Sequence record: ON529853.1
DNA: 64,000 bases
Reading direction: 5' to 3' (one strand)
The translations under genes and the position numbers were made by a program. A model generated the notes under the pieces. The model saw nothing but the letters and a program-made list of their open reading frames with translations, searched no databases and was not told the DNA's origin. The number at the start of each line of letters is the position of its first letter. Positions within the stretch are counted from its first letter, which is position 1. Below are positions 6,886 through 33,478 of this stretch, in pieces.

Positions 6886-6915
6886 GGGGTCCTCCAGGTC
6901 GTCGTTGATTGGGTG

Positions 6916-6942
6916 TGTAAAGGAATGATCTGCGGAGATCAA
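6916..6942 (-). promoter_or_regulatory. Class A phage promoter (TTGATC-N17-TACA, TTCCTT before -10)
   Basis: Minus strand TTGATCTCCGCAGATCATTCCTTTACA. Confidence 0.75.
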
Positions 6943-6944
6943 GC

Positions 6945-9900
6945 CTAGTTCAGCACCTTCTCCACAAAAACTGCGAAGGCTTCATGCGCAGACGCGAAGT
7001 CGCGCGAGGTGAGGTCGTCGGACAGGTCCAGCCCCAGGCGATCGCCTTCCCACAGGATGCGCCAGGTGCCCGGCGTGGCGGTGCGCACGCCCTTCTCGTC
7101 CTCGGTGAACGCGGCGCGCAGCCGGGCGACCCGGCCCGACTTGACCCGATCATAGACGCCGGCGGTGTAATCAATGTCGTAGGCGTCGGCGTCGCGCTTG
7201 CGAATCGAGAGGGAGTCCAGGCGGGTCATGCGCGGCGCGGCCGGGCGGCTGATCTCGCCGTAGGGATTGTCGGTCTCGATGACGCGCACGCCGAAGGATT
7301 CCCAGCGCAGGGTGTGCGGCGCGTGGCGATCCGACGAGGTCAGGGTGATGTGGACCGTCTTGTTCAGTTGCGATCGGTCCGTGTGAGGGTTCGCCATGAT
7401 GTTGATCAGGGCCTGGTCGTCGACCGTCGCCGCCGTGGCGCTGTCATAACGCAGCATGTCCATGGGGAACTCGGCGCTGTAGCGCAGTTCAACCGTAAAG
7501 GTGTGCATGGGGTCCTCCTCTTGCGTCGTCCAGGCGGCTGTAAAGGAACCCAATGCGTCTGTCAACGACGCGGTCATTATTTCCGGCGGCGGAACTCGCG
7601 CACCTGGACAGCCTTGGCCTCGAAATAGACGTCGGGTCCACCGGATTTCAACGGCTTTTCGACGAAGGTGCGGGTCTTGGTGTCCTGCATCAGGCGCAGG
7701 TGCCCGCTGCGGGTCAAGACGTCCAGGTGCCGCTCGGCGGCGCGGTCGCCTTCAAAGCGGTAGCGATCGTCGTAGTAGGTCTCTTCGCCGCCGCGTCGAG
7801 GTCGCGCCACGGGCTTGATGTGGTAGATCGCGGTGACGGCGAAGGTGTCGCCGACGGCAGGAGCGACCTTCTTCAGATAGGCGCGATTGGCGCGGGTCAG
7901 GAGGGTCATGCGCTGCGCCCCTTCATCATAGAGGAGACCCAGCGTTTAAACACCATGAGATCACGATCAAGGCGCGGTTTGCGCCAGGGCGGCAGGGCGA
8001 GCGGCACCACCGAGGTGGGGTAACGCACGCCGGTGTAGAGTTTGTCCACGACTTCCTGCATCAGGCGCTTCATCTCAACATCGGAGATGCGCGAAACTTC
8101 TGCCCATGGAATTTCGCCGTAGGGGGTCACCACCTTGACGTCGCTGTAGTCACCCGTCTTGCTGGAGGGCGTAATGCCGGCGTGTAGGTCTTCCAGGAAA
8201 GTGTTGCGCACGCAGGTGTGCGCCAGGCAGATGGCCTGAAATTGTTCTGGGTTCAGCGTCTCCGGGTCGAGCGGTCTCATGACACCTCCAGGGCTTTGAC
8301 TTTTGTGACGACGCCGGGCGCCAGGACCATCAGGGCCTTGGCGCCGCACGGCAGGATGCCGGCCGGGTCATAGACGAACCGGCCGACGTAGACGCCGGTC
8401 TCGGTCCACAGTTCGATCTCGTGGCCGTACTCGGGGTCGATTGAGGACCGCCCGCGCGAAAGCTTCAGCGGCGGATCGTTCTTCTCGTGCTTGCGATTCG
8501 AATCGATCGTCCCCCGATTGACGTGGATCGTTCGGTCCTGGGGCGAGATCGGCGCGATGGCGCTCATCTTGGACAAGCGGAACTCCTAATACTTGATTTT
8601 CGAGCCGTCGTTGAGGGTGAAGGTGCGCTCGACCTTCGTGCCCAGTTGGACGTCATTGCGGGGACGATAGGGATGCTCGTAGGCGGCGCCGCCCGATTCC
8701 AGCAAGGGCAGTTCCCGCGCCGCGCGTCGCCCGTAGACGGCGGCGCACTTATCGCCGCAGAAATCCGCGTCGATGTAGGACTCTCCGTCCCAGGTCTCGA
8801 ACCACTGGACATACCCCGCGCGTTTGCGATCGGTGTCGCCGTAGTCGTGGATCGCCACCACCCGGCGATTGGTCAGCCGCTGGCAGTCTTCCAGAGTGCG
8901 CGGATGGTTCGGCTCGATCGTGTGCTCGTAGCGATGGTGATCCGTGCTCAACCGCAGGGGTTTGGCGCACTGCCGGCAGGTCTGAACCTCCCCGGTCAGG
9001 TCCGCCTCCCAGTTGATGGTGACTTTGGCGTAGGCCGCCTTGTGCATGGCGCGCGCCTTCATGCGCGTCGGCGGCAGGGGCTTACCACCGCCGTCGAGCA
9101 GCACCGTCAGGTTCTTGCGCCAGGCATGCGTCAACGCCGCGCCGACGCCGACGCCATAGAGCGTGTCGACCTGGGCTTCAGCCGCTTCAAACTTGGCGAT
9201 CGTCGGGCGCTCATAGAACAGCTTCTTCAAGCCATGCCAGGAAGCGTGCTCGTCCCGGTTCCAGTAGTTGCAGCCCAGGCCGTTGAAGACCACCGCCGTG
9301 GGCGAGCGCATCATGATTCGCACGTCCGAACCCGGAAAGATCGAACCCGCCACCTGCGGGTGCGCCTTCTCGATGGGGACGAAGACAATCTCGGGCGTCA
9401 TGCGCAGCGCACCATGCCGTGCGGGGTCTGGCCCCATTCCAGCCAGGCGATGACCACCGCCTCCTGCATGAGGGCGGGGTCGCTGACCTCGACCGAACGC
9501 ACGCCGGCTTCGGTCATGAACAGCTTGGCGGTCGCCGCCCACGGGACCTGCGTCTGGGTGACAGGATTGAAGGCCCGCCCCTTGAAGGTCTGGATGCCGA
9601 CCAGCTTGCGGGTCTTGGCGTCGCGGCGCCGGGCGAGGAAGGCGCGCAGCATCAGGCGGGCCACAGCGAGACCGAGCCCGGATCGCGCCAGGACACTTCA
9701 TAGCCGTGCTGTTGCGCCCAGGCCTCGATCAGCGGGTGGACCCAGGGATCGAACGGGGCGAACTCGCCCTCGAACTGGCCCTGATAGTGGGCGAAACCGC
9801 GACCGTCTTCGGCCGAGACGATAATCTCGCGGACGTCATCCTGGGAGGCGAAGGCCGTCGGATGTAGGTCGCGGGTCTCCCATTCGGCCAGGCCGTCGGC

Positions 9901-10008
9901 CCCGATCACCTCGTTGCCGTCGGCGTTGCGTTTCAACTTGTAGAACGGGTCCACCACCGTCAGCTTTTTGAGCGATTCGACGGCGTCGTCGCGGGTCTTG
10001 AACGGCAT
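6945..10008 (-). CDS. Hypothetical proteins (6945..7508, 7577..7909, 7906..8280, 8277..8576, 8586..9401, 9398..9664, 9652..10008)
   Basis: Coupled ORFs. Starts re-picked downstream of the class A cassettes and RBSs. Confidence 0.65.
7539..7565 (-). promoter_or_regulatory. Class A phage promoter
   Basis: Minus strand TTGACAGACGCATTGGGTTCCTTTACA. Confidence 0.8.
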
Positions 10009-10038
10009 GGGCTTCCTCCTGTTCGTCGTCGACCTGGA

Positions 10039-10065
10039 TGTAAAGGAACTGTCTGCGGGTGTCAA
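10039..10065 (-). promoter_or_regulatory. Class A phage promoter
   Basis: Minus strand TTGACACCCGCAGACAGTTCCTTTACA. Confidence 0.8.
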
Positions 10066-10130
10066 CGGGGTTGTCACTCGTGCGCTTCGCGCCCTCGTGC
10101 CCGGCTCCGCCGGCCCCACCTCCGGTCAGG

Positions 10131-10679
10131 CTAGGCGGCGAAGCGGTCGATCATCCAGTGCAGGTCCTGCGGCTCGAAGGCGTCGAACTCCTCGATCAGG
10201 TCGGCGGTCACGGGAAAGGCGATCACTTCAGCCGAGGCGGGCGGGACGACGCTGCGGCGGCTGTCGGCCACGGCGCCCTTGCCGCGTCCGATACTCTGGC
10301 GTGGCTTCGCACCGCGTTTCGGCTTGTAGGTCGCCTTGCGGCGCAGGGCGTTGCTCTGCTTGGACGTCTCGGCGTCGTCGGCCCGCTTCAGCCCCAGGCG
10401 GTCGAGCCGGCCCAAGACGGCGCTGCGGCTGCGATTGCCCATGAGCAGGCTGATCTCCTGGGCGGTCTTGCCCTCCCGCCAGAGCCGGACCAGATCGTCA
10501 ACCTCGGCCTGGGGCCAGGCGTGGGTCGGCTTTTTCGGCTGCGCGGCCCTGCGGGCCTGGACCTTTGCGATCCGGCGCAGTTCCGCCCGCTCCTGCGGAT
10601 CAGCGGGAACCTCCATGTCGTCCCAGTCACCGGCGCCGCGCCAGTCTCGGCTCGGATCGCCTTCCAGAAGCGTCGTCAC
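10131..10679 (-). CDS. gcrA: GcrA-like transcriptional regulator (GcrA N-terminal HTH)
   Basis: AWPQAEVDDLVRLWREGKTAQEISLLMGNRSRSAVLGRLDRLGL matches the GcrA N-terminal pattern (W...L..LW..G.SA.QIA..LG..TR.AV.G...RLGL). GTG start overlaps the serS stop (GTGA). The C-terminus is shorter and divergent from host GcrA. Confidence 0.75.
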   Translation of the reverse strand: MTTLLEGDPSRDWRGAGDWDDMEVPADPQERAELRRIAKVQARRAAQPKKPTHAWPQAEVDDLVRLWREGKTAQEISLLMGNRSRSAVLGRLDRLGLKRADDAETSKQSNALRRKATYKPKRGAKPRQSIGRGKGAVADSRRSVVPPASAEVIAFPVTADLIEEFDAFEPQDLHWMIDRFAA

Positions 10680-15436: not shown

Positions 15437-15585
15437 CGCGCCGCCTCCCAGGCCACGAACATCAGCAGGCCGATGAAGGCGCCCTGCACCAGCGAGCGCG
15501 CCAGCCAGCCGATCGTATTGAGGCCCAGCATCAGGACGATGCCGAGCAGGATGCTGATGGTCAGGCCGATCAGGTGGGTCTTCAA
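15421..15585 (-). CDS. 54-aa two-TM membrane protein (below ORF-track cutoff)
   Basis: Hand translation MKTHLIGLTISILLGIVLMLGLNTIGWLARSLVQGAFIGLLMFVAWEAARWMKR. TTGA overlap with the XRE stop. Confidence 0.65.
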   Translation of the reverse strand: MKTHLIGLTISILLGIVLMLGLNTIGWLARSLVQGAFIGLLMFVAWEAARWMKR

Positions 15586-16028
15586 GACTTGGATTCCTTC
15601 AGTTCGGTGAGGGAGGTCACCAGGGCGGCGACGACCTTGCGGCGCCCCGGCGACAGGGCGGTGAAATCGGCCAGCAGCTTGACGCCGCCCTGGGCCAGCA
15701 GGGCCGAGTGATCATCCATGAGGGCCGGGTCCGTCGCCGGGAAATTCGACGACGGGTCCTTGTAGAAGTAGTTGGGCGAGACCTGGAGGGTCTCGGCCAG
15801 CAGGTGGATCGTTCCCGCCATCAGCCGGTTTTCGCCGGATTCGTATTTGGCGATCTGCTGCGGCGTCAGGTTCATCTTCAGGGCCAGAGCCTTCTGGGTC
15901 AGGCCGATCTCGGTGCGCCGCGTCAAAAGCCGCGTGGCGATGCGCCGGTCCACCTCAGCGGTGTTGTAGCGTTCGCCGTTCTTGCGTCCGGTCGAGACCT
16001 TCTTGGGCTTCTGGGGAATGTCGGTCAT
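15582..16028 (-). CDS. XRE-family HTH transcriptional regulator (alphaproteobacterial type)
   Basis: VDRRIATRL..RR..IGLTQKALA..MNLTPQQIAKYESGENR...LA..LQVSPNYFY pattern. Confidence 0.9.
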   Translation of the reverse strand: MTDIPQKPKKVSTGRKNGERYNTAEVDRRIATRLLTRRTEIGLTQKALALKMNLTPQQIAKYESGENRLMAGTIHLLAETLQVSPNYFYKDPSSNFPATDPALMDDHSALLAQGGVKLLADFTALSPGRRKVVAALVTSLTELKESKS

Positions 16029-16036: not shown

Positions 16037-18163
16037 TTACGCAATCAGGGGTTCGTAGCCGCCGTTTTCACGCGTGCGGCGGAAGCAGTTCAGGTGTTCG
16101 GGCGGGCGGAGATTCGGGTGCAGCTTCGCCAGGGCCTTCCGGCCGGATTTGGACAGAGGCGCCTTGACCCTGAAGTCCATCTTCAGCCACGGATTGTGAA
16201 CCATCCAGGCGACCGGATCGATCCGGGTGAGCAGGTGATTGCCCTTGTGGTCCGCCTTGACGTCATGGTGCTGGAGCACGTCGGGCAGGTCCTGGACCGC
16301 GACCCCGCAGAGCCAGGCGATGTCCGCCGCCGTGTGCGGGGAGAAGATGGCGGCGTAGGTCGCCTTGGCCTCGTTGACCGCGCAGAGTTCGCCGCGCCCG
16401 TAGCCTTCATAGCTTCCGAGGCTGAAGCCGGCATGACGGCTCACAAGATCGCCGTAGTCCACCATCTTGGACGGGATGGTGAGGTCATAGGTCGTCAGGA
16501 AGCGCGAATAGGTCTGGCGCAAAGTCCCCTCGCCGACCCTGTGCTCGGCTCCGTGGGCGGTTGCGTAGGCCGAGAAGCCGTCGCCGGTCGGTCGCCCAAC
16601 CCAGACCTCGCCCAGGGCGGCGACTTCCAGCAGGCGCGCGCGATTGGCCGTGACCCTGGCCTTGAACCAGGCGAGGACCTCGTCCTTGCGCCGCTCGTAC
16701 TCGGCTTCCGCCAGCACCTGGACCTGCTTGGCGTAGGTGGCGCGGGCCAGGAATTTGCGGTCGGCGTCGAGTTGTTCGGCCGGGCCGAAGGCGGTCAGCC
16801 GCATGGGCTCGATCGTGGCGACCTTGCGGGCCGCCGCGATGTCATGATTGGAGAAGGGCTTGAGGGCGCTTTCCTTGTCTTTTTCCGCAACCTTGACCGA
16901 CTGACCGTCGGCGGGCGTGATCCTGTAGACGTCGCCGGCGTGACCCAGCAGGTTCAGCGGCGCGTCGCTCAGCGCCGGCGCATAGCGGCGCTCCAGCCAG
17001 GCGTTGTGATCGCCGCCCTTCTTGCCCAGCGCCTTCTCGTCATGGGCGGCGTCGGGGCCGATGTCGGTGACCGTCAAGGCCGGCAGGCCCAGGGTCTTGA
17101 CGTTGGTCACCGGCAGGTGGGCCGCCCGCGCCAGCAGGGCCATTTCGTTTTCTGGGCGGATCATCTCTCCGGTGTAGGAGAGTTGCGGCGCTTTGAAGCC
17201 CTGCTTCCAGAACTTCTGCACGATCAGGTCGAGCATCATCGTCAACCAGATGGTCTCATGGGCGCCGATCTCGCCGATCTTCTTGGTCTTGACGCCGTCT
17301 TCGTCGTAAACGGCGACGCCGGACTCCTCGCTCGCGGCGAAGATCAGGCGACCCTTCTCGTCCCAGTCGACGTTGAGCAGTTCGTAGGGATACCAGTTAC
17401 GCGAGATGCGCGCGTCCATGGCCTTGTCGGGCCGGCGCGCCATCTTCGACGCCAGCGGATGAGCGTGCTTGGGCACATCCGTCAGCACGAACAGGTTGGC
17501 GCCGTTGCGGATCGCGAAGGCGAAGAAGGTGTCGTAGATGAAGGGGTCTCGGATCATCGCCAGGCACACGCCCGACGGGGTCGCGGTCATGGCCCCGAGG
17601 AAGGAGTTGATGTTCCAGTATTGGCGGATCGATTCGACGTAGACCGGCTTGACCTGCGGGTCTTCGCCCTGGCCGTCCAGGAACTGGTCGACGTGCAGGT
17701 TCTGGAGCGAGCGCAGGGCGTCGCGGCGCAGGATGGCGATGACGTCGGGCTTGGCGAGCAGGGCCTTGACGTCGTCGCGTTCGGCGGCGCCGTACTGGGA
17801 CAGGCCCTCGCGCAGCCGCTCGATGAAGGCGTCGCGCGCCTCGACGATCTCGGCGCGGTCGATGATCGCCAGCAGCTTCTTGGCGGTGGCGACCTGCTCG
17901 GCGATCTTCTCGGGGTTCTCCAGCAGGTCCTGCATGTTGGTGGTGGCCGATTTCAGCCAGTCCATCACATAGACCTTGAACATCAAGGTGGCGGTGATCT
18001 CGGTCGGATCGAGTTTCAGCGCCTCGCGCAGCCCATGGTAGGCGTCGCGCACGTTCCATTCGCCGATCGTGCGGGCCTTGACCGTGCCGTCGGCGCCGAC
18101 CTTGACGCCGGTCAGGTCGCCCCACAGTTCAATGGCGGCCCAGAGCGGGCTTTCCTCGTGCAT
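16037..18163 (-). CDS. Large hypothetical protein (708 aa)
   Basis: Long ORF with phage-like codon use, GGAGGAC RBS and class A promoter. No motif recognised. Confidence 0.8.
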   Translation of the reverse strand: MHEESPLWAAIELWGDLTGVKVGADGTVKARTIGEWNVRDAYHGLREALKLDPTEITATLMFKVYVMDWLKSATTNMQDLLENPEKIAEQVATAKKLLAIIDRAEIVEARDAFIERLREGLSQYGAAERDDVKALLAKPDVIAILRRDALRSLQNLHVDQFLDGQGEDPQVKPVYVESIRQYWNINSFLGAMTATPSGVCLAMIRDPFIYDTFFAFAIRNGANLFVLTDVPKHAHPLASKMARRPDKAMDARISRNWYPYELLNVDWDEKGRLIFAASEESGVAVYDEDGVKTKKIGEIGAHETIWLTMMLDLIVQKFWKQGFKAPQLSYTGEMIRPENEMALLARAAHLPVTNVKTLGLPALTVTDIGPDAAHDEKALGKKGGDHNAWLERRYAPALSDAPLNLLGHAGDVYRITPADGQSVKVAEKDKESALKPFSNHDIAAARKVATIEPMRLTAFGPAEQLDADRKFLARATYAKQVQVLAEAEYERRKDEVLAWFKARVTANRARLLEVAALGEVWVGRPTGDGFSAYATAHGAEHRVGEGTLRQTYSRFLTTYDLTIPSKMVDYGDLVSRHAGFSLGSYEGYGRGELCAVNEAKATYAAIFSPHTAADIAWLCGVAVQDLPDVLQHHDVKADHKGNHLLTRIDPVAWMVHNPWLKMDFRVKAPLSKSGRKALAKLHPNLRPPEHLNCFRRTRENGGYEPLIA

Positions 18164-18193
18164 GTCAGTCCTCCTTCGTCGTCAACGGGAGGA

Positions 18194-18220
18194 TGTAAAG
18201 GAATGTTCCGAGCATGTCAA
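18194..18220 (-). promoter_or_regulatory. Class A phage promoter
   Basis: Minus strand TTGACATGCTCGGAACATTCCTTTACA. Confidence 0.8.
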
Positions 18221-19411
18221 GCCAACGCCGCACGACCCGCGTCAGTAATGACGGCAAAAGCGATCTTGGCGCCCTTGTGGGTCTTGTAGGGGCTGATCCT
18301 GGGCTCTTCCGTGATCAAGGCTTCACGGCGCAGGCGATTCGACACGCCGGGATTGATCTCCTGCATCGGCAGGGGAGCACGCGCCAGGCCGCGCAGAACG
18401 CCCAGGGCGTGGGCGGACAGCGGATGGGTCCGGGTCCCGTTGTTCGGCGGGATCGTCGTCTGATCCATGTGTTCCTCCGCTGCTGACATGACGGTTCTTA
18501 CGGCGCCGGGCGCCAGTCGTCAACGCTCAACGTCTGGGCGGAGGCCCATCAGGCGGCGGCGTGCGGCACGACGCCGAGCGCGCGCAGGGTCGCGATGTTG
18601 CCGGCGGCCTGGGCGATCACGCGGTCGCGCGCCGGGCCGTCCATGGCCGAGCCGAAGCCCTCGCTGACGGCGAAGGTCGTGCAGTCGGGATTGGAATCCT
18701 TGATCAGCCCGTAGAAGACGGCTTCGAACTCGCGATATTTGTCCGAGTTGTCCAGCTTCAGCCCAAGCGCCAGCAGTTCGCCGCGCAGGTGATCGAACGT
18801 CGCCGCGAAGAAGGCGTTCAGCGCCTTGGCGTCTTCATAGGCGCCCTCGGGGGCGTTCTCCGCGCAAGCCTCCAGCTTTTCAAGCTGGCTGTTCAGGTCG
18901 CGGGCGTTGATGCAGGTGCGGATGGTCATGGCGTGTCCTCCTCGAATGTCGTCAGCCGGGTTGTAAAGGAATGCTCTGCGTAATGCAAGCCCTAGTCAAC
19001 GCCGGACGATTCGATCTTCGCCCCGCGCTTGGGGGTCAGGCGCCAGTCCAGGAAGAACGCCCTGAAGCCGAGTTTGGACCGCATCAGTTGCAGGCCCAGC
19101 AGGTCGAACTGGATATACCCCCGGTCCTTGGTCAGCGCCTCCGACAGGCCGTAGTCTTCCACCGGTCCCGCCTGGTAGGCCCAGGCGAGGTTGAAGAGCC
19201 GGCTCACGCCCAGGGAGACAGCGTAGACGCGCTGGCTCTGATCCCAGTTGATGTCGAACCCGACCCCGAGAAGGCGGGCGCGTCGGGTCCAGCGGGTCGC
19301 CGGCCGGGACAGGCCGAGGAAGGGCGCCCAGTCATGGTGGTGGAAGGAGACCTTCAGCCAGGGACGGCTGATGCGGAAGGTTCCGGGAGCAGGGGCGGCG
19401 GGATGGGTCAT
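18217..19411 (-). CDS. Hypothetical proteins (18217..18489, 18549..18929, 18992..19411)
   Basis: ORF track. 18549..18929 and 18992..19411 have GGAGGAC RBSs. Confidence 0.65.
18962..18988 (-). promoter_or_regulatory. Class A phage promoter (degenerate -35)
   Basis: Minus strand TTGCATTACGCAGAGCATTCCTTTACA. Confidence 0.7.
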
Positions 19412-19439
19412 CAGGTCCTCCTTGGATGTCGTCCAGACC

Positions 19440-19468
19440 GCCTTAAATCATTCCTTTACAGATGTCAA
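19440..19468 (-). promoter_or_regulatory. Promoter TTGACA-N17-TAAGGC whose spacer carries the class A core in inverted orientation
   Basis: Minus strand TTGACA TCTGTAAAGGAATGATT TAAGGC, followed by GACGAC and AAGGAGGACC. Confidence 0.7.
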
Positions 19469-19587
19469 CGCCGACGAAAACAACGCCGGAACCAGCCCCA
19501 GTTGAACGTCACGGTTTTTCGGAAGGCTTCGTTGCGCATGATCCAGGGGCCGAAACGTCGGGCGTTCCAGGGGTCAGGCAGGTGCAT
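19465..19587 (-). CDS. 40-aa Trp/Arg-rich peptide (below ORF-track cutoff)
   Basis: Hand translation MHLPDPWNARRFGPWIMRNEAFRKTVTFNWGWFRRCFRRR. GAGG upstream. Fills an otherwise empty gap. Confidence 0.45.
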   Translation of the reverse strand: MHLPDPWNARRFGPWIMRNEAFRKTVTFNWGWFRRCFRRR

Positions 19588-19639: not shown

Positions 19640-19652
19640 CGTCTAGCCTTGA

Positions 19653-20141
19653 TCACGTAAACTCGAACTGGTCGTGACAGGAACCCTGGCAATCCATCGG
19701 GGCCAGGTCCGCCAGAACGTCGTAGACGGCGCGCACCCTGGGATCGCCTTCGGGCTCCAGCTTGACCCCGTACTTGGCCGCGACGGTGTAGGTGTCGTCG
19801 CCGACATCAATCTCCACCGACAGCGCCAGCTTGGTGTAGCGGCCGACGTATTCGCCACGCGCCTTCTTGGCCTTGTCCCAGCGGTCCAGATCAGCGATGA
19901 CCCGGAACGCCTGGGCCTTCGCCAGGGCCATGCCCATTTGCGCCCAGTCCTCGTCGTCGAACAGGTCCGCTTCGGGCGGCACAAAGACCTTGAACATCGC
20001 CTTGTATTGGTCGAAGCGCTTGCGCGCGCCGGGGTGGCCGCACATCATGGCGGTCGCCGCCGCCAGGCCCATCGCCTGCATCAGCATGGGTGCGTCGGTG
20101 ACGTCGAACTCGATCGTTCGCGTGTTGCGGCTGTTGCTCAT
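19653..20141 (-). CDS. Hypothetical protein
   Basis: Start MSNSRNT after AGGAGGACC and the class A element. Confidence 0.7.
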   Translation of the reverse strand: MSNSRNTRTIEFDVTDAPMLMQAMGLAAATAMMCGHPGARKRFDQYKAMFKVFVPPEADLFDDEDWAQMGMALAKAQAFRVIADLDRWDKAKKARGEYVGRYTKLALSVEIDVGDDTYTVAAKYGVKLEPEGDPRVRAVYDVLADLAPMDCQGSCHDQFEFT

Positions 20142-20191
20142 CAGGTCCTCCTCAAGGTCGTCGGCCGGCATAGAGCATAGCTGACGCCCTT

Positions 20192-20218
20192 TGTAAAGGA
20201 ACGATTAGAAGCCGAGCA
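20192..20218 (-). promoter_or_regulatory. Class A element lacking a good -35
   Basis: Minus strand ...AATCGTTCCTTTACA. The -35 position reads TGCTCG. Confidence 0.5.
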
Positions 20219-20771: not shown

Positions 20772-20785
20772 GAGAAGCCTTGAGT

Positions 20786-21837: not shown

Positions 21838-22078
21838 ACTGCGCCGTGCCGAGGTCGATCACGCCCTTGTCGGGGAATTCGTCGCGGGCGTAGATCGGTA
21901 GAAAGACCGGCGCGCCCTCCATGACGAAGAGCACCGACCCCTTGGACCCGGCATGGGCGGAGAACACCGTGCGGGCGTGCGCCATCGCCAGGCCGGCGTC
22001 GGGCGCACGCACCCGATAGGCCTTGGGGTTGGCGGCCTCGTAGGATTCGGTCACGATAACCGTAAACAGCTTCAGCAT
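21827..22078 (-). CDS. Hypothetical protein
   Basis: Start MLKLFTV after AAGGAGGACCCC. Confidence 0.65.
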   Translation of the reverse strand: MLKLFTVIVTESYEAANPKAYRVRAPDAGLAMAHARTVFSAHAGSKGSVLFVMEGAPVFLPIYARDEFPDKGVIDLGTAQFEG

Positions 22079-22105
22079 GGGGTCCTCCTTGTCGTCAGGG
22101 GATGC

Positions 22106-22132
22106 TGTAAAGGAATGATCTGCGGATGTCAA
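22106..22132 (-). promoter_or_regulatory. Class A phage promoter
   Basis: Minus strand TTGACATCCGCAGATCATTCCTTTACA. Confidence 0.82.
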
Positions 22133-22497: not shown

Positions 22498-23446
22498 CAG
22501 CGCTCGGCTTTCGGGTGCGTGTTGGTCAAGGCCCAGCCCTGCTGGAAGGTGGTCAGCCCTTCCAGTTCGGCCTCGGTGAGCGCCTTGGCCCGGCCGCCGT
22601 TGCCCCAGCCGAACCAGGTCTGGAACGGCGCAGCCGGCAGGGCATGAGCCGCCGCCATGCGGGCGACGGCGGCGCATTGCTCTGCGTCCGCGCCCCAGGT
22701 GGCGAGGTCGATCACGCCGTCGTCACGCACGCCGAGCAGTATGACGCCTTGCAGCGCGCGCTGCTCCGGCGCCAGGGCGCCGTGCCAGCCGCGCATGTAG
22801 TTCGCCAGGATGCTGGCGTCTTCCGCGTCTTCCGCGCGCGCTCGCCATCCGGTGAAGCCCTCCAGCAGCAGCAGCAGGCCGACCGCTTTCAGGGCATGGC
22901 GCGCGATCAGCGCGTCCATCCGCTCATGGTGCTGCTCGCGCACCTCCGCCGTGAAGAGGTCGCGCGCGTCGGCCGCTTTGAGCCGGCTGTCGGGGTCGTC
23001 CTTGATCGCCATCAGGTCTTGTCCAGGTTGTAACGCTCGCGATCTCCGGGCGTCAGAATGCGTTCCAGGTCCTGGAGCGGCTTGACCAGGGACTGGGGGC
23101 CGCCCTTGACGGCGTCTTCGAACCGCACCGTCGCTTCCAGGGTGTCCTTGTCGATGTAGGCGATTCGGCCCTTGCAGTCGGGGATGTTGCGATGATGGAA
23201 CTGCACGCGGTCGCCCACGCGCAGCGAACGCCACTTGACGGCAAGGACCAGATTGGTGCCGATCCGGAGCGGTTCCGGCGGCTTCTCGCTCTTCTCGCTA
23301 AACGAGCGGGTATCGAAGAAGGGGCCAAGCACCTGCAACGTCACGCCGTTGGCGTCGAAGTGATTGTTGCTGCGCACGATCCTCATAGGCACGAGGACGA
23401 CATCGTCTTCTCGCAGGTTGTGGGCGTCTTCCTTAGACAGGGACAT
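22497..23446 (-). CDS. Two hypothetical proteins (22497..23012, 23012..23446)
   Basis: TGATG-coupled ORFs. The second has KOW/SH3-like VGDRV segments. Confidence 0.65.
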
Positions 23447-23825: not shown

Positions 23826-24578
23826 CTAGGCTTCCTGGTTGCTCAGGGCGACGACCCGATCCAGCCCGATGGCGACCTCGAACACCGTCAGGCTGTTCTT
23901 GGGGGTCGTGCCCAGGTAGGGGTCGAATGTCGGGAAGTCGGTGCGGCGCGAGGTCGACGCGATTTCCTTGAACTCGGTGTGCGTCGGGACGGGGGACCAG
24001 AGGCCTTCGATGTCGATGGTCTCGGTGGCGTAGGTCGGCAGTCGGTCCGACGGGACCTGACGGGTCGGCTGACCGATGATCTGGGCCAGTTCGATCTCCA
24101 GAGCGTCCCGCAGCGCCGTGGCGTAGTCGGCGTGGCTGTCGGCGCGGTAGATGCACTGGAATTCCAGTTGGTAGAAGGCGTTGAACCGCAGTTTGGCGGC
24201 CGTGGCGCCGTCGGCGGCCTCGGTGCGGAACGACAGGCCGGCCTGCCATACGCATAGCGGCGGCTTGGCGCTGGTCGCCTGGAGCAGGTGCTGGGCGTAG
24301 AGATAGGAGCCCGGCGTGGTCTCGGCGCGCAGCGCCCAGGTCTCGGCGTTCATCTCGCGCCGCAACGAAAAGACGTCGTCGGCCTCGTAGGCGTCCGAGA
24401 AGCCGGCAAGCGGCATGATGACCGGCGCCTCGACCCGTTCCAGGCGCCAGGACTGGTTGAGGTCCAGAAGAGTGCGCTCGACGCACCCCTTCAGTCGACC
24501 GACCGCCTGCTCGCGCTGCTGAATTTCCTTTTCGCTCCAGAATCGCAGACCTGCGATCGGATATAGCGCGCGACTCAT
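23826..24578 (-). CDS. Stand-alone class II aminoacyl-tRNA synthetase catalytic domain (Gly/Pro/Thr-like core, no anticodon-binding domain)
   Basis: Motif 1-like VEAPVIMP, LRAETT, motif 2 GLSFRTE...RFNAFYQLEFQ, motif 3 FEVAIGLDR. The protein ends immediately after motif 3 (250 aa). Confidence 0.8.
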   Translation of the reverse strand: MSRALYPIAGLRFWSEKEIQQREQAVGRLKGCVERTLLDLNQSWRLERVEAPVIMPLAGFSDAYEADDVFSLRREMNAETWALRAETTPGSYLYAQHLLQATSAKPPLCVWQAGLSFRTEAADGATAAKLRFNAFYQLEFQCIYRADSHADYATALRDALEIELAQIIGQPTRQVPSDRLPTYATETIDIEGLWSPVPTHTEFKEIASTSRRTDFPTFDPYLGTTPKNSLTVFEVAIGLDRVVALSNQEA

Positions 24579-24608
24579 GGCGGCTCCTATGATTGACGGT
24601 GACGGTGA

Positions 24609-24637
24609 CAGTAGCCGTCAGGATAGTTGACTGTCAA
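24609..24637 (-). promoter_or_regulatory. Class B promoter TTGACA-N17-CTACTG with ATCCTGACGG in the spacer
   Basis: Minus strand TTGACAGTCAACTATCCTGACGGCTACTG. Flanked by TGACGG/TGACAG repeats. Confidence 0.7.
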
Positions 24638-24646: not shown

Positions 24647-25192
24647 CTAGGACCAGCGGGTGATCCGCACGAGTTCTCGCGCCTGGACCGGGTCTCGCCC
24701 CGCCTTGATCCAGTCCTTCAGGATGAAGTCGCCGCGCAGCATCGGCCACTCCCGCGAGAGCGCCGCCACGGCGCCGTCGTCGAAGGCCGCCTGATCCATG
24801 GGGACATAGCTGACCGGCAGATGGAGGGAGCGGGCCAGGTCGATTTCACCGCGCACGCCCTCTGATGTCGCCGCGCCCGGCATGTCGATGACGACGATGG
24901 CGTCGCAGCGCGCCAGCAGCCGGCGGGAATAGTGCTGCCAGAACTCCCAGTTGCCGGGGATTTTGTGCTTGCCCAGGATGGCGTGGTTCATGAGCGGCGA
25001 GACTGGGAAGGTGTCGCCGGCCGTCAGCATGTCGGCGACGGTCTTGTCGAAGGCGCTCATGCGTGCGGCGACGATCAGCGGGTCGGGGTCGCTGTAGGGC
25101 GCCGCGACATAGACCAGGGAGGCGCTGGGCGACGGCCGGGCGAAGAAAGGATCGGCGATCTCTTCGGACGTGGGGTGTTGAATGTCGGTCAT
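24647..25192 (-). CDS. Nucleoside 2-deoxyribosyltransferase-like (DUF1937-type) protein
   Basis: VYVAAPYS...LLARCDAIVVI..PG...SEGVRGEI..A pattern. Confidence 0.7.
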   Translation of the reverse strand: MTDIQHPTSEEIADPFFARPSPSASLVYVAAPYSDPDPLIVAARMSAFDKTVADMLTAGDTFPVSPLMNHAILGKHKIPGNWEFWQHYSRRLLARCDAIVVIDMPGAATSEGVRGEIDLARSLHLPVSYVPMDQAAFDDGAVAALSREWPMLRGDFILKDWIKAGRDPVQARELVRITRWS

Positions 25193-25743
25193 GCGTCTTC
25201 CTCGTTTTCGGGCCACACGATCTCGTCGCGCATGACCTGGTCGAACTCGTCCCAGGCGGCGGCGGGCGTGGCGTGCAGGGTGGGCGAGCAGTCCCCGCCG
25301 GCGTGGACGCGGTAGCCGCCGTCTTCCGCCAGCACGGCCCAGGACCGCATGTTCATCGCCGGCATCGGCCGGGAGCGGTCGACCAGGCCCGAGTGCACGA
25401 CGCCGTCGGGGTTGAGGACCGGATCGTAGTAGTCCCCGGCGATGATCGCACGGATACGATCTTCAGGTTTCAGCGGCTCGCCCCGATCCAGCCGACGCAA
25501 GACCGCCGTATCGTACTGCGGTTGCGAGAGCGGCGGCAGGGGAACTTCCGAGATGGCGCCGATCCGCTCTACCCGCGCCTTACCGACCGGCCGATCCAGG
25601 AGCGTCGACGCGCAAAAGTCGTCCGCCAGCACCTCGGCGCGATAGGCGGCGGCGTCGGCGCAGTCGATCTCCACGATGTATTCGGTGGTGACGCGGACCC
25701 TGGCCTTGAAAGACCGAGGTCTGTCGAGAATGTCGTCATACAT
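25189..25743 (-). CDS. Hypothetical protein with hairpin-occluded RBS
   Basis: ORF track. See the hairpin feature at 25745..25776. Confidence 0.7.
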   Translation of the reverse strand: MYDDILDRPRSFKARVRVTTEYIVEIDCADAAAYRAEVLADDFCASTLLDRPVGKARVERIGAISEVPLPPLSQPQYDTAVLRRLDRGEPLKPEDRIRAIIAGDYYDPVLNPDGVVHSGLVDRSRPMPAMNMRSWAVLAEDGGYRVHAGGDCSPTLHATPAAAWDEFDQVMRDEIVWPENEEDA

Positions 25744-25744
25744 G

Positions 25745-25776
25745 AAAAAGGCCGCCTCCCTTGCAGGAGGCGACCT
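25745..25776 (-). terminator. Terminator-like hairpin plus U5 whose 3' arm is the RBS of 25189..25743
   Basis: AGGUCGCCUCC/GGAGGCGGCCU 11-bp stem followed by UUUUCAUG. Confidence 0.65.
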
Positions 25777-25803
25777 CTATCAAGTAGCATTGACGTCTGT
25801 CAA
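25774..25803 (-). promoter_or_regulatory. Promoter TTGACA-N18-TAGAGG
   Basis: Same TTGACAGAC and TAGAGG boxes as the 37356-37384 promoter. The predicted start site falls inside the hairpin. Confidence 0.55.
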
Positions 25804-27876: not shown

Positions 27877-29636
27877 TCAGGTCTCCTGGAGCAGACGGCG
27901 GGCGTAGGCGCGCGCGTCTTCGTTAGTCGCCGGCAAGCCGGCGTATTCTTCGGCCGTGATCGGCGCGATAGTGACGATGGAATCGGCGAGCCCCGCCATG
28001 GTCTTCGGGGTCCATTCACGGTAGAGCCCGTCGGGGCTGTTCGCGATGGGCTGGTAGCGCTCGCTCGGCCGGGCGTCGATCGAGGCGAAGCCGGCCTTGG
28101 TCACGCTGGTCACCTGGGCGCGGCGGACCAGCATGACCTTGCCGCGATTGCCGCCCCAGGCCCTGACCGAGGTCAGCTTGACGAAATCACCCTTCTTCAG
28201 CATGGGCACGTCCATCACAGAAGGCTCCCCGACTCGATCTCGTCATAGACGGCGCGGGTCAGCACGGTTTCAGGTTTGCCGTCCATCTTGGACTGGCTGT
28301 GTTTCTTGATCGTCGCCTTGATCCGGTAACGCTTGCCGGCCTGCGGGCGTTGCTCGCCGGTGGCGAAATGGACGCAGCGGCTGCCGTCGTCGCCCAGAAT
28401 CGCCACGACGGTCTTGGGTCCGAACTGGCTCGGGATCACCGTGCAGCGCTCGATCAGGCCGGTGAAGACGTAACGGCCGCCTTCGTCGCCCTTCAGATGC
28501 TTCGGCTCGGGACGGGCCTGGGCGACCGATGCGTCCTTCACGCGTTGCAGCGAACGCCCGACGAACATGGCGACGCCGGCCAGGATGATGTTGTAGCGCT
28601 TGTTGCGGGCGTATTCGCACGACAGGGCGATGCGCAGGTTCTCGCCGAAGTCGCCTGTGGCCTTCTCGACATAGTCGACGAGCGCCATCAGATCGAGCGG
28701 CTCCTTCAGCGGGTGGGCCTTGTGCCAGTCGCGCGCTTCCTTGAAGCGGCGATCGTAGCGTGGGTTCATGTCGATCGCGCCGCGCAGGGCGAGAACGTCG
28801 TCGCGCAGGGCGTCGCGGATGTCGCGCCCATAGCCGCCGTAGCGGACCGCCGCCTGATAGACGTCGCGGACCAGGCCTTCGACCCAGAAATGGGTGGCGT
28901 GGGCGCCGCCCCAGGCGTCGCTGTCGTCGCGGTCGCCCACGATGGACGAGCGCACGGCTTCGCGCGCCAGGATGTCGTTGGCCTCCAGGCCGAGGAAGTC
29001 GCGCGAGCATTGACGCCCGATCACCAGACGGCGGCCGTCGTCGGTCTCCACCAGGAAAGAGGCGCGGCGATCGCGTTTGTGTCCACAGTGGTCGCAGTCA
29101 CGCCAGCGCGGCAGATAGGGCTCCAGTTCAGCCGGGTCAGCGCCGTTGAGCGCGTGGCGATAGACCTGGACGTGGTCCTCGGCCATCTCGAAGGCGCCGA
29201 TCAGGCGCGCGTTCTCGCCGGCGACGGCGGGCGCCTCAATGGTGACCAGGACCTGGCGGATCATCAGGGGACGGCCCAGGCGGTCGCGCCGGAAGCGGTT
29301 TTCGGTAAAGACCTCTTCGGTCTTGATGATCTCGACGGTCTGGTGGAAGCGCTTCATGCGCTTGTCCAGCTTGGCGACGGCCTTGACCACGTCGGCTTCG
29401 GCGCCGTCGTCGCAGGTCAGGACAAACCGCTGGCGGCCGCCCGGCGCGCCTTCGACCAGGGAGACGCGGTGGTGTCGCTGGGGTTCCGGCGGGTTTTCGC
29501 GGCGTTCCGCCGCGATCCACGCCTCGACGTAGTCCGGATCGTCGAACGGGTCGGCGCCGGCGGATTCGAACGCGGCCGCGACGGTCTCGCCCTCGCGGTG
29601 ATCCAGTTCGGCTCTCCAGTCTTCGGCGTCGTACAT
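27877..29636 (-). CDS. Hypothetical proteins 27877..28218 and 28215..29636 (CDHC zinc site, C-terminal OB-like region)
   Basis: CDHCGHKRDRR...IGRQC motif. Start MYDAEDW after a class A promoter. Confidence 0.7.
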
Positions 29637-29663
29637 AGCGTCCTCCTCGTGTCTGGGGAGGCT

Positions 29664-29690
29664 TGTAAAGGAACTAAATGCGGAAGTCAA
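29664..29690 (-). promoter_or_regulatory. Class A phage promoter
   Basis: Minus strand TTGACTTCCGCATTTAGTTCCTTTACA. Confidence 0.78.
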
Positions 29691-29692: not shown

Positions 29693-30678
29693 CTAGCGGA
29701 GCACGCGATCCGCATAGAGGCATTTGGCGTTGAACAGAGCCGCCGGCGCACGAAGGGCCGAACCGCCGCGACTGTCGAAAACGAGCAGACCTGCGGACGG
29801 GTCTTCGCCGTCGGCGCTGTAAAAACCGTAGCCGCAGGCCACGAAGTCGACCCCGTCCACCGCCACCAGGAACAACCGTGCGAACTCGACTTGACGCCCT
29901 GTGGCCCGCGTCACCGCCCTCGACACCTGTTCGATCCGGGCTTCATTGGGCACGGTTGACAGCGGTCCCCAGGAGAGGCGCTGGCGCTCCGCGCCTTCAT
30001 TTCGATAGAGCGTGGTGATTCGAGGGTTGGTCATCGAGGCGCCCCAACCACCGACATCGGGAGGCAGGGCGAACCAGGACGTCTCCGGCCCGCGCCCGAC
30101 CTGGCGTAAGGTGATGCGCACCTTTTCGTCGAGGCGGCAGGCGCGAGCGAGGTCGTGATCCACGAAACCGCATCCCGCCTGTTGGTCTTGAATCCGACGG
30201 ATGACCGCAGCTTCTTCGCCGGGAAGCCATCCGCGCACCACGGGAGGAATGTCCTTCAGCCGCTCGATCATCAGATGGGCGGGTTCCAGCAGATAGGCGC
30301 GCACATCGGGATCGGCGCGGCAGGCCTCGGCCAGCGCCGCTTCGGCGTAGTCGCAGGTTTCAGGGTCGCCGGCGCGGGCGGTGTTCGGCGTCAGGCTGAA
30401 CAACACGCAGGCGGCGCCCCAGGCGGCGAAGACACGCATCTCTGTTCTCCTTACAGCCGAGTATGCTCGACGTCGCCGTTGGCGTGGAAGGTCCAGGCGT
30501 TCAGACCGCACCAGTCCGGATCGTCTTCTTCCCGCTTCTGGTGCTCCACGGTGATTTCGGGCGCACAGTTCACCGGCAGCTTGCGCTTGGCGTAAGCGAA
30601 GGCCAGCCCCTTGCGACGGAAGGGGTGATCGGTGTACCGCCCTTCCTCAGGGCAGACGGTGACGACGAAACGCTCCAT
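29693..30678 (-). CDS. Putative exported protein 29693..30439 and small hypothetical 30451..30678
   Basis: MRVFAAWGAACVLFSLTPNTARA-G signal-peptide-like N-terminus. Confidence 0.6.
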
Positions 30679-31238
30679 CAGGCCGGCACCAGCCCCCGGA
30701 AGGTCAGGGAGATGCGCGCGCCGACAGGCTCATCCTCCATCTTGGGAATGGCGTGGAGGTGCGATTGCTGCATGCCGGGACGCATGATCAGCAGCGACCC
30801 CGGCTCCAGCAGCATCCGCTCGGGATGGGCGCCCTTTTGATTGCGCTTGAAGGCGATGTCGCGCCCCGCGCCCAGGGTGATCACGGCGATCGGTCGGTTA
30901 TGGTCGATCAGCGCGTCGTCGTCGGCGTGCCATCCCAGGCTGTCGGACCCGTCGTGATAGAGGTTCAGGAAGCAGCCCTCCAGACGCACGCCGGCCTCGG
31001 CCTCGATCTGGTCGCGGCAGATGTCGATGAAGGGGTGGGAGGGCCGAGGCAGGTAGGTCCGCTCGCCGGCGCCGACGCCATAGGTGTAAGGGCGATCGAA
31101 GGTGTTGGTCCAGTATTCCGAACGCGGCGCCGTCTCCCGACGCTCCCATGCCAGGCCGTCGCGCAGCATGAGGAAGCCCGCTTCCTGCATGTCGGCGGCG
31201 ATGAAATCATCGAAATACACCACGGGGGCGTCGGACAT
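30678..31238 (-). CDS. alkB: AlkB-family 2OG-Fe(II) dioxygenase
   Basis: LNLYHDGSDSLGWHADD (HxD), LHAIPK (H), RISLTFR (R..R). Confidence 0.9.
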   Translation of the reverse strand: MSDAPVVYFDDFIAADMQEAGFLMLRDGLAWERRETAPRSEYWTNTFDRPYTYGVGAGERTYLPRPSHPFIDICRDQIEAEAGVRLEGCFLNLYHDGSDSLGWHADDDALIDHNRPIAVITLGAGRDIAFKRNQKGAHPERMLLEPGSLLIMRPGMQQSHLHAIPKMEDEPVGARISLTFRGLVPA

Positions 31239-31268
31239 GGGGACCTCCTTATGCAACTGAGGCGAGTG

Positions 31269-31297
31269 TCGTAGCGGAAGCGAGTGCTGTTTGTCAA
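31269..31297 (-). promoter_or_regulatory. Promoter TTGACA-N17-CTACGA, preceded by CGAGTG
   Basis: CGAGTGTTGACA context is shared with the promoters at 37379-37390 and 38163-38174. Confidence 0.65.
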
Positions 31298-31322
31298 CAC
31301 TCGCGCGCCAGAGGGAAACTAC

Positions 31323-33420
31323 TTAGTCGGGCGCGTCACTGTCTTTAACGACGTCAGACCGGGGAGGGTTCAACGCCAACAGGACGGTTTTACCGACGCT
31401 CAAGGGATCGACGCCGGCCGCCAGGGCGTCGTGCAGCCGTGAGCCCAGGGCGCGCTCGCCCAGACGTTGCATGGCGAAGTCGACATGGGCGTCGATCTCG
31501 CTCTTGGCGTTCTCGCTCATCTCGGTGATCGCTTCGTGGGCCTGCTCGGCCACATAGGGCATGTTGGCGGTGAAGTCGCGCTCGGCCTGGGCCAGTGTCG
31601 CCAGAACGTCGTTGAGATCGCCCTTGCGGACCGACCCGCCCGCCAGCAAGGCCTCCAGCGCCTTCCGGGCCTGGGTTAGCCCTTCGGCGGCCGAAGACGC
31701 CTTCTTGGAGATGGCCTCGCGGAAGGTTTCTTCGTCATGTTTGTGTCGCCCAGGATCGCGCGGCGTCAGATAGTCGCCGGTCTGGGGATCACGGTAGCGT
31801 CGCAGGGTGCAGGGCACGCCGCCCGTGTTGAACGACGACAGCAGGCGCGCCCACTGGACTTCGCTCATTTCAACGCGAGCGACCGAACGGTTCTCGTGGA
31901 CGCGATCTCCAGCGTCGCGTTTGACCAGTTGGGCCGTGCTGATTTCCAGGATGATGGCGTGCCCCTGGGGGTAGTCGACCATGAACAGGTCTGACTCGCC
32001 TGACACTCGCGCCACGGTCACCATGCCGAACGACGGATGCTCGACCTCATGGCCGTGCAGGTCCCGGTCGCGCACGTCGACCGCGATGATCCGGGCGGGG
32101 TCGTCGATTTCATCCCAACGCGACAGCAGGCTGCCGCTGTTGTTGCGGGCGACGAACACCACGCGCGGCTCGGAGAGCATGACCGCGTTGAGTTTGTCAT
32201 TCCCCGAGATGCCGCCGTAATGCTGGAAGTCGTGCGGCTTGATCCCCATCAGGGCGCAGGCCTCCTTCTGGGTCGGGGCCGCGACGTAGCAGTGCGCCTG
32301 GTTGTGGTGCGGCGACACCGCCTTCAGGCGCGGATCGGTCTTCATGTACCAGTAGACGTGCAGGCGTTCAGTCATGGGTCCTCCGGGGAGCGTCGTCAGG
32401 ATTTTCTGTAAAGGAATGATTTGCCGAGGTCAAGCGCCCAGCTTGACCCAGGCGGCGTCGCGACGTTCGTGGGTCTGGACCCAGCCGTCGTAACGGGGCT
32501 GGTGGTAGGCGATTTCGCCCGCCAGGGTTTCGATTTCGTGGCGAATGTTGCGCAGCTTGGCGGCTTTGAGGCGGTCGTAGGTCACCTCGGGATGCTGGGC
32601 GCGGCGGATCGCCTTAGTCGCCTCGAAGACAGCCTCGAAGGTCCCTCGGGTCACCATATGCCGGGCGGTCTGGGCCTTGGACCAGGCGTTGGGCCGCGTC
32701 GTCTCATCCGCGAAGGTCCAAGTCAGCGCATGGGTTTCGGCTTCGGTGTCGATCAGCGCCTTTTCGGCGACGACCTTGCTCGTCCGCAGCATCTTCAGCA
32801 TGGCGCCGAGACGTTCGCGCGAGACTTCCCACGGCAGCGACTTCGCCCCGTAGCAGGAGGCCGTCTGCCAGCCTGAGCCCGGCCGCTGATAGCCGTGGTG
32901 GGCGATCTCACCCGTCTCCGCCAGAATACCGCGCTGGCAGCATTGGCAGGTCATCGCCTTGGCGTCGCGTTCTTCACGGGCGATCGAGGTTTTCGAGGGG
33001 CGCGGCGCCCGCTTGCCGATCAGGGGTTTGAGGCCGTCGAGCGCCTGAGCCAGGGGCAGCATTTCCTCCAGCAAGGCGACCATGGCGTCGCGCATGGCGC
33101 TTTCGCCTTTGAAGGCCTTCGCCTTCTTCAGATAACCCGCCACCAGATGCGGATAGGGATGGCCCAGGCTCCAGGCCAGGTCCTGCTCCTTCTCGGAGAG
33201 GGACGACATCGCCCCGTTCCAGCGGAAACCGTCGCCGATCACCTTTTTCCAGGCGGCGTCGATGGCGTTGGAGACGTGGTATTTGACGTCGGCGAATTCC
33301 GCCTTGATCAGGACGCCTTCCGCCTGGAAGCCGGCGATCTTGCCCAGAGCGCCTTCGAGGTTTTGGGCGTAGCGGTCCGAGATATTAGCGAACATCGTGG
33401 GGAAATCGGTCGGCGTCATG
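31323..33420 (-). CDS. Hypothetical proteins 31323..32375 and 32430..33420 (latter with CQCC...HGY...C metal motif)
   Basis: ORF track. Each sits behind a class A promoter. Confidence 0.7.
32407..32433 (-). promoter_or_regulatory. Class A phage promoter
   Basis: Minus strand TTGACCTCGGCAAATCATTCCTTTACA. Confidence 0.78.
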
Positions 33421-33451
33421 CGGGGTCTCCGTCCTGAAAGGGTGAGGAGGC

Positions 33452-33478
33452 TGTAAAGGAACGATTTGAGGATGTCAA
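33452..33478 (-). promoter_or_regulatory. Class A phage promoter
   Basis: Minus strand TTGACATCCTCAAATCGTTCCTTTACA. Confidence 0.8.

Follow-up and report, generated by a model that had tools for sequence, protein, structure and literature searches.

A lineage-specific RpoD-type promoter variant predicted from recurrent cassettes in the leftward accessory-gene array of Brevundimonas phage vB_BpoS-Bambus

The stretch of DNA considered here (the window, 64 kb, record positions 124,001-188,000 of ON529853.1; megablast, 100% identity) belongs to Brevundimonas phage vB_BpoS-Bambus, a member of the Dolichocephalovirinae with a genome of 348,100 bp, and its left-hand part carries repeated copies of a short cassette built around the sequence TTCCTTTACA. 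The whole 348-kb Bambus genome was analysed in addition to the window. A mostly leftward array of ~230 small, mostly unnamed accessory genes extends over record positions 44-157.5 kb (~113 kb), and the window covers its final 33.5 kb, that is, the last third of the cassette family. In a preliminary description of the window this part had been called the left arm; it is the tail end of a much longer block of leftward genes rather than an arm of a 64-kb phage. Cassettes with the TTCCTTTACA-type promoter are termed class B, and those with a host-consensus-like promoter class A. The class B cassettes of the window are listed below with their predicted promoter elements (window positions; orthology refers to the Brevundimonas phage Gurke).

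33417..33478, minus strand: class B cassette at the head of the entire leftward array; its -35 is TTGACA (33473-33478), the motif occupies 33452-33461 and the ATG 33417-33419, gene 32430-33419.
32373..32433, minus strand: class B cassette; -35 TTGACC, in which the TGA ends the upstream gene, motif at 32407-32416, GACGAC, GGAGGAC, ATG of gene 31323-32375; orthologous site in Gurke.
29634..29690, minus strand: class B cassette with the -35 TTGACT and the motif at 29664-29673; the leader has the variant GACAC and runs to the ATG of gene 28215-29636.
22076..22132, minus strand: class B cassette whose -35 TTGACA overlaps the stop codon upstream; motif at 22106-22115, GACGAC, GGAGGAC, ATG of gene 21827-22078.
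20139..20201, minus strand: atypical class B copy; motif at 20192-20201, 3 nt past the stop of a NUDIX gene, no -35, 31 nt to GACGAC; heads gene 19653-20141, which is without a Gurke counterpart.
18927..18988, minus strand: class B cassette; -35 TTGCAT, motif at 18962-18971, GACGAC, ATG of gene 18549-18929.
18161..18220, minus strand: class B cassette in which the -35 TTGACA and the upstream stop overlap, with the motif at 18194-18203; heads gene 16037-18163 (708 amino acids) and the XRE (TgrL-like) gene 15582-16028.
10006..10065, minus strand: class B cassette with its -35 at 10060-10065 and the motif at 10039-10048, leading to the ATG of gene 9652-10008; a three-hairpin repeat element (10069-10133) lies directly upstream.
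7506..7565, minus strand: class B cassette; motif at 7539-7548, ATG of gene 6945-7508.
6883..6942, minus strand: class B cassette with the -35 TTGATC and the motif at 6916-6925, leading to the ATG of gene 6205-6885 (GmrSD_N-like).

Within the window, TTCCTTTACA occurs in 11 exact copies, far above chance (0.00 expected from 100 dinucleotide-preserving shuffles), and these lie exactly where the preliminary description had placed them, at 6916, 7539, 10039, 18194, 18962, 20192, 22106, 29664, 32407 and 33452 on the minus strand and at 19451 on the plus strand. The other features that had been attributed to the copies were found again. A TTGNNN hexamer stands exactly 17 bp before TACA in nine of the ten minus-strand copies (TTGAC in seven, TTGAT in one, TTGCA in one), the copy at 20192 having no such hexamer and a long leader. 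GACGAC is present in the leader of eight of the ten, and a GGAGG-type Shine-Dalgarno sequence followed by ATG in all ten, each of them in an annotated gap of 50-175 bp ahead of a minus-strand gene. The right arm of the window is likewise empty of class B, as had been reported, because the sole additional site from a one-mismatch search (58597, plus strand) has no -35 and falls within a gene end.

The count of about 11 copies holds for the window, but it understates the family. A full-genome motif scan, which had been proposed earlier, was run with a weight matrix built from the motif copies and returned 33 full class B sites, all on the minus strand between record positions 44,355 and 157,450 (the latter being window 33,450); three of them are TTTC or TTCT variants. 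TTCCTTTAC alone is found 32 times in the genome against 0.38 expected (z about 50). The sites have the form TTGACA-nnCGCA-N5-TT(C/T)CTTTACA, are co-oriented with the genes in 33 of 33 cases and amount to about one per seven genes of the array. A -35 of TTGAC or a one-letter variant is present in 31 of the 33, and the distance from hexamer to TACA is exactly 17 bp in nearly all. Information content reaches ~2-2.5 bits across TTCCTTTAC, near maximal for the base composition, is 1-2 bits on TTGACA and CGCA, and is near zero elsewhere. When the minus-strand copies of the window are aligned, the order is TTGACA, 11 nt, TTCCTTTACA, 8-12 nt, GACGAC, 3-8 nt, GGAGGAC, 3-5 nt and ATG, and from the end of TACA to the start codon the median distance over the class B sites is 29 nt. 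Between record positions 44 and 100 kb, class B is the only promoter type seen; outside the array, class B matches in the Bambus genome are weak or odd. An exact TTCCTTTACA at 338,684, for example, is located in a hairpin loop; the hairpin is rich in GC and has TTTTTT after it (record 338,665-338,720, plus strand, among minus-strand genes). No earlier description of the class B motif was found in the Bambus genome paper, the phiCbK genomics paper or, searching for the motif string, the full-text literature.

These properties make it very probable that class B elements are functional promoters. They are best described as a lineage-specific RpoD-type (sigma-70 family) promoter variant fused to a leader and a ribosome-binding site (RBS) that are general in the phage subfamily. 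Each cassette would then be a compact expression unit for one gene or a short operon, with TTGACA as the -35, a 17-bp spacer, a -10 whose first letters are the motif's TACA, ~7 nt of pyrimidine-rich discriminator, a start-of-transcript box GACGAC(AAC), the strong Shine-Dalgarno sequence GGAGGAC and ATG. The Caulobacter RpoD (sigma-73) consensus is TTGaCgS ... GCtANAWC (PMC8144410). The class B -10 has TA.A, matching the defined core of GCtANAWC, and the GC before and the WC after are missing; no extended -10 (TGn) is present, positions -15/-14 being C/T and T. The invariant TTCCTT had been said to exceed what the host needs, and it does lie beyond the RpoD consensus TTGaCgS / GCtANAWC (PMC8144410). 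Class A, found in array gaps without the class B motif, has the form GTGTTGACA-N16/17-GCTAnnA or a close variant and fits that consensus (PMC8144410), an upstream TGGCG-N5 signature often preceding GTGTTGACA. In both classes, GACGAC follows the -10 hexamer by ~7 nt and leads to the same Shine-Dalgarno sequence (GGAGGAC) and ATG. Class B resembles Caulobacter RpoD promoters and class A in its TTGAC -35, the gap of 16-18 bp, a -10 starting with TA and with A in fourth position, and the GACGAC leader and Shine-Dalgarno sequence of class A. It differs in that TT(C/T)CTT replaces the GC-containing upstream part of the -10, in the CGCA of the spacer, in having no TGGCG-N5-GTG, and in its restriction to a single strand of a single 113-kb array and to a single phage lineage. 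TT(C/T)CTT at -18 to -13, together with the spacer CGCA, is what separates class B from class A.

Conservation between phages is block-wise. In 50 kb of Gurke, which matches Bambus only in part (~78% DNA identity), there are 13 TT(C/T)CTTTAC sites, including sites in orthologous gaps, and class A is present. Six orthologous Bambus/Gurke pairs share TTGAC (6/6), CGCA (4-5/6) and TT.CTTTACA (6/6), with flanking positions at 0-3/6, and TTCC and TTTC interchange freely in the orthologous gaps. Across the genus boundary, 50 kb of the Caulobacter phage CcrColossus holds TTGACg-N11-TTTCTTTACA with a GACGA(C/T) leader; 50 kb of CcrPW (Caulobacter) has class B as in Colossus (TTTCTTTACA), and class A is present in both. 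A full class B cassette is also found on two metagenome contigs (67% GC, ~2 kb each) that carry distant homologues of Bambus genes. No class B was found in phiCbK (Caulobacter, 138-188 kb; ~13 class A), in Bajun (Brevundimonas, 1-50 kb; ~17 class A) or in CcrBL9 (Caulobacter, 250-300 kb; no conspicuous class A). Class B therefore tracks phage lineage (Colossusvirus plus the Bambus and Gurke groups) and not host genus, since it occurs in the Caulobacter phages Colossus and PW yet is absent from the sampled parts of phiCbK, Bajun and CcrBL9. Class A spans the two host genera, being present in phiCbK, Bajun, Colossus, CcrPW and the Bambus group. The strict 27-bp class B form was found in no Caulobacterales genome among 185,579 species representatives, in which it gave four chance hits in unrelated taxa. 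In IMG/VR, TTGACA-N11-TTCCTTTAC gave a single match per locus among the matches listed (80 of 118 stretches), which is consistent with chance.

The inverted copy at 19451 lies in the spacer of another leftward promoter.

19409..19468, minus strand: leftward promoter with the inverted motif in its spacer; TTGACA at 19463-19468, N17, TAAGGC, the motif at 19451-19460 on the plus strand; then GACGAC, GGAGGAC and the ATG of gene 18992-19411.

A 15-nt inverted block at this site is identical in the phage Kabachok and in Gurke while the surroundings differ. An orientation-independent block conserved in a promoter spacer has the look of a protein-binding site, and no other single observation hints as strongly as the inverted copy that the 10-mer goes beyond a -10 box. 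A small RNA starting from the inverted copy was considered and rejected as unlikely, because the DNA to its right encodes a small protein that is conserved in Gurke. For the open reading frame (ORF) 19465-19587 (minus strand, 40 codons, annotated as hypothetical), Gurke has a conserved protein counterpart that lacks an annotation. The TTGACA of the next promoter contains the stop codon of this ORF.

The placement of the cassettes bears on how they might be transcribed. No terminators were found between the units, terminator-like hairpins being at chance level; the 50 nt upstream of the -35 have a mean folding energy of -14.2 against -15.0 (sd 4.9) in controls and no T-runs. Between units the gaps measure 50-68 bp. 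In four gaps of the window, the stop codon of the upstream gene is inside the -35 box (TGA of TTGACA). The lack of terminators and the stops within the -35 therefore make the cassettes look like internal boosters, that is, class B would act as a set of internal booster promoters on one long read-through transcript. GACGAC is most likely the first transcribed sequence, because it stands at the usual distance from the -10 and just after a pyrimidine-rich stretch. As for timing, position and gene content indicate that class B most likely serves early or delayed-early genes. TgrL of phiCbK is an early regulator that represses the host genes hfiA and gafYZ, and tgrL was placed in the early class by RNA-seq (PMC10688885). 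In phiCbK, two genes stand between a class A promoter and tgrL (L129 16860-17237). The window homologue of tgrL (15582-16028, minus strand) encodes an XRE protein with 29% identity to TgrL and follows the class B promoter at 18194 with one gene in between. In RefSeq NC_019405, tgrL is D865_gp202, and the paper numbers it gp216.

On balance we lean slightly towards the invariant block being an extra determinant read by a dedicated factor. The block would be recognised by a trans-acting protein, most likely phage-encoded, which would either gate class B through an operator overlapping the -10 or aid RNA polymerase in using class B, and class A and class B would then be separately regulated in early infection. 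In its more specific form, with TT(C/T)CTTTACA as the target of a phage protein that sits at the -10/proximal spacer as a sigma cofactor or a -10-overlapping switch, the proposal is tentative. An alternative is that class B promoters are plain promoters of the host RNA polymerase, TT(C/T)CTTTACA being a strong -10/proximal-spacer variant for the RpoD of Caulobacterales that needs no dedicated factor, arose once in the Colossus/Bambus lineage and has been kept since any change weakens the promoter. The near-perfect -35 with its 17-bp spacing, the fit of TA.A to the defined core of GCtANAWC, a leader and RBS identical to those of class A and the free swapping of TTCC and TTTC at Gurke/Bambus orthologous gaps all agree with such promoters, as does the comparison of candidate proteins, which yielded no factor. 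However, the 9-10 consecutive invariant positions include -18 to -13, where RpoD makes few contacts, and exceed the host consensus; the GC preferred by the host at -14/-13 is replaced; the flanking signatures of the two classes stay separate and unmixed (TGGCG-N5-GTG and gaC in class A, CGCA in class B); and the inverted copy in the spacer of another promoter is conserved across genera. We consider promoters read by the host polymerase alone a less likely account of class B, and the main rival to the dedicated factor.

Several observations weigh against a dedicated factor, or against the promoter assignment itself. With a good -35 at the right spacing, the host RNA polymerase may need no helper. 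By E. coli rules the -10 TACAnn is weak, and scanning 16-34 kb for promoters of the E. coli type returned none. RNA-library runs over 17500-23400 (three, plus one DNA run) gave few sparse, low-depth contigs and no 5' end information. The absences from phiCbK, Bajun and CcrBL9 are provisional, with a 50-kb sample of each, and the host-genome search took in the strictest 27-bp form only. No candidate factor co-varies with class B. A phage-specific promoter class read by a phage factor had been suggested earlier, with GcrA-like and XRE proteins as candidates; the distribution by phage lineage fits a phage-specific class, but the named proteins do not follow it. Both a GcrA-like protein (10131-10679; Pfam GcrA, N-terminal part only) and an XRE protein are encoded in the window, and they have homologues in phages in which no class B was found (phiCbK, Bajun). 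The class B motif contains no GANTC site. The published TgrL-type (TgrL/RtrA) motif is described as having one strong half-site, and the XRE protein may yet have a link to class B. The product annotated as a 'middle transcription regulatory protein', encoded outside the window, belongs to the core set of the entire subfamily and shows no detectable sequence similarity to MotA; it has no Pfam hit and no PDB sequence match, and it occurs also in phages in which no class B copies were found.

It had also been suggested that the repeats act as recombination points for accessory cassettes, in the manner of the promoter-early stem-loop (PeSL) elements of T4-type phages, which are composite units of terminator stem-loop and promoter associated with indels (PMC2839356, PMC4122927). 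Many similar copies do occur within an accessory-gene region, the copy at 20192 is without a -35 as if truncated at a junction, and three Bambus-specific blocks relative to Gurke (genes at 18217-18468, 19465-20141 and 32430-33419) are flanked on both sides by promoter gaps. Gurke is collinear in gene order, with 13 Bambus-specific blocks, and three of 13 flanked on both sides, where ~1 is expected (rough binomial p ~0.09), is suggestive at most; such blocks are equally explained by genes arriving with their own promoter. The comparison of breakpoints between related phages that had been proposed as a check does not favour shuffling at these elements. Kabachok is 87-93% identical to Bambus across aligned blocks, and its six indel breakpoints in the left arm do not coincide with class B (0/6), one being beside a class A gap and the others at plain gene junctions. 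Moreover, there is no stem-loop or terminator half beside the promoters, and identity among copies is limited to short functional blocks, which leaves little homologous substrate. That the repeats are mainly recombination substrates is therefore improbable. A role in RNA is less probable still. Because no terminators separate the units, each element is also transcribed from upstream and could work in read-through transcripts as a boxA-like antitermination signal (the 10-mer matches rrn/lambda boxA CTCTTTAACA at 7/10 positions) or as an anti-Shine-Dalgarno sequence masking the next RBS (UUCC can pair with GGAG). However, pairing of motif and Shine-Dalgarno sequence is predicted in 11/32 copies only, a TTGACA at a fixed 17 bp is unneeded for an RNA signal, the inverted copy would fail on the leftward transcript, and there is no Rfam match.

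Among phage systems with repeated, co-oriented sites, the stoperators of Cluster A mycobacteriophages (L5 repressor sites) number ~30, are asymmetric, keep one orientation relative to transcription and lie in short intergenic spaces. Most stoperators are outside promoters, and they belong to temperate phages. Class B, with 33 co-oriented sites, one inverted copy and a phage DNA-binding protein as candidate reader, is similar to stoperators (mentioned in PMC3203893), but nearly every class B site is at a fixed distance from a -35 and there is no sign of a temperate phage. T4-type PeSLs share with class B many early-type promoter units between small accessory genes in a plastic region (PMC2839356, PMC4122927); class B differs in having no stem-loop/terminator half, in indel junctions that lie elsewhere and in a non-consensus -10. 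The start-associated sequence (SAS) of Cluster K mycobacteriophages is a 13-mer that stands 3-7 bp before the start codon, holds the Shine-Dalgarno sequence and is thought to act in translation (PMC3203893). Like SAS and extended SAS (ESAS), class B is an asymmetric repeat in one orientation, in the non-structural half of the genome and ahead of start codons, usually ATG (PMC3203893). A likeness to these sequences had been proposed for the cassettes and fails on position, the class B block ending at a median of 29 nt before the start codon compared with 3-7 nt; class B also has promoter geometry and a sequence unrelated to GGGATAGGAGCCC.

T4 middle promoters, with the MotA box TGCTT and a -10 (PMC4122927), resemble class B in adding a phage box to a sigma-70 promoter (TCCTTTA in class B, TGCTTTA in T4), and the depositors of Bambus annotate a MotA-like gene elsewhere in the genome. 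The MotA box, however, replaces the -35 near -30, whereas class B keeps its -35 and has its box at -18 to -9. Class B has no TAnnnT at the MotA-type distance of 11-13 bp, and a start there would fall in the Shine-Dalgarno sequence. A MotA-type middle promoter was rejected on this geometry and on the lack of sequence similarity between the annotated protein and MotA. The TTAA-N7-TTAA box of CtrA-regulated phage promoters (PMC9437464) is absent from class B elements. An IHF site (WATCAANNNNTTR) was also rejected, because its letters fit in part but the conservation pattern is the reverse of that of an IHF site, and none of the consensus sequences for CtrA, LexA, sigma-32, sigma-54 and extracytoplasmic function (ECF) sigma factors fits class B.

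Present understanding of how phiCbK-like jumbo phages control transcription hardly extends past CtrA boxes and the XRE protein TgrL. In Bambus, three sets of cis elements are spatially separate: a CtrA-box region, class A on both arms and class B in one giant array. If the proposal of a dedicated factor is true, jumbo siphoviruses of the Colossus/Bambus type would hold a separately timed accessory regulon of ~230 genes beside class A and the CtrA-box region. The map of cis elements could guide time-course transcriptomics, the 10-bp motif could serve as bait for the regulator, and the ~60-bp cassettes (promoter, leader and RBS) could provide compact expression signals for the genetics of Brevundimonas and Caulobacter.

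Class A promoters are found on both strands between record positions ~101 and 197 kb, including the right arm of the window (37384 minus, 38169 plus, 43731 plus and 52985 plus). Class A promoters in the window include the following.

31236..31297, minus strand: class A cassette; TGGCG-N5-GTGTTGACA-N17-GCTACGA, leader, Shine-Dalgarno sequence, ATG of gene 30678-31238.
25741..25803, minus strand: class A promoter; a hairpin with a T-run (25745-25775) comes next and holds the Shine-Dalgarno sequence of gene 25189-25743.
24576..24637, minus strand: class A cassette; TTGACA-N16-GCTACT, heads gene 23826-24578.
18466..18523, minus strand: class A cassette; TTGACG-N17-TAAGAA, heads gene 18217-18468.
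1898..2013, minus strand: class A promoter; GTGTTGACG-N17-TAGGGG, GACGAC, GGAGGAC; heads the 17-codon ORF 1903-1956 and gene 1673-1900.
37323..37384, minus strand: class A promoter in the right part of the window; GACGAC leader, heads gene 37032-37325.
38169..38239, plus strand: class A promoter with GACGAC leader, heads gene 38237-38515.

Class A, unlike class B, serves both arms, as indicated by the plus-strand promoter at 38169..38239. At window 31270-31297 and at many phiCbK L129 sites, TGGCG stands ~5 nt upstream of GTGTTGACA and gaC just after it, and this composite signature may be a candidate site for another factor. The GC-rich hairpin followed by TTTTT at 25745-25775 (minus strand) comes immediately behind a class A promoter and may work by attenuation or as a switch of translation. 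The ORF at 1903-1956 (minus strand) is unannotated and hydrophobic (MRALPLLTCLLIICLSF, 17 codons) and lies between the class A promoter/RBS and gene 1673-1900; Gurke has a similar ORF of 16 codons at the matching position.

Two further elements were noted. The three-hairpin repeat (~60 nt) is present in nine copies, at window 10069-10133 and 51688-51752 (both minus strand) and at record 34809, 35156, 35477, 42960, 52161, 76933 and 87699. Five of its base pairs show compensatory double changes, and its first hairpin holds a perfect GGAGGTG. Two copies are directly upstream of class B promoters; the repeat has no Rfam match and has an orthologue in Gurke. Sites of the CtrA type, 74 TTAA-N7-TTAA and 56 TTAACCTTAA, are elsewhere confined to the part of the genome that begins at record 335 kb, passes through the record start and ends at 26 kb. 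Inside the window, a CtrA-type cluster at 53413-53448 consists of GTTAACCAT and then TTAA-N7-TTAA overlapping TTAACCTTAA, ~30 nt ahead of the start of a flotillin gene at 53476.

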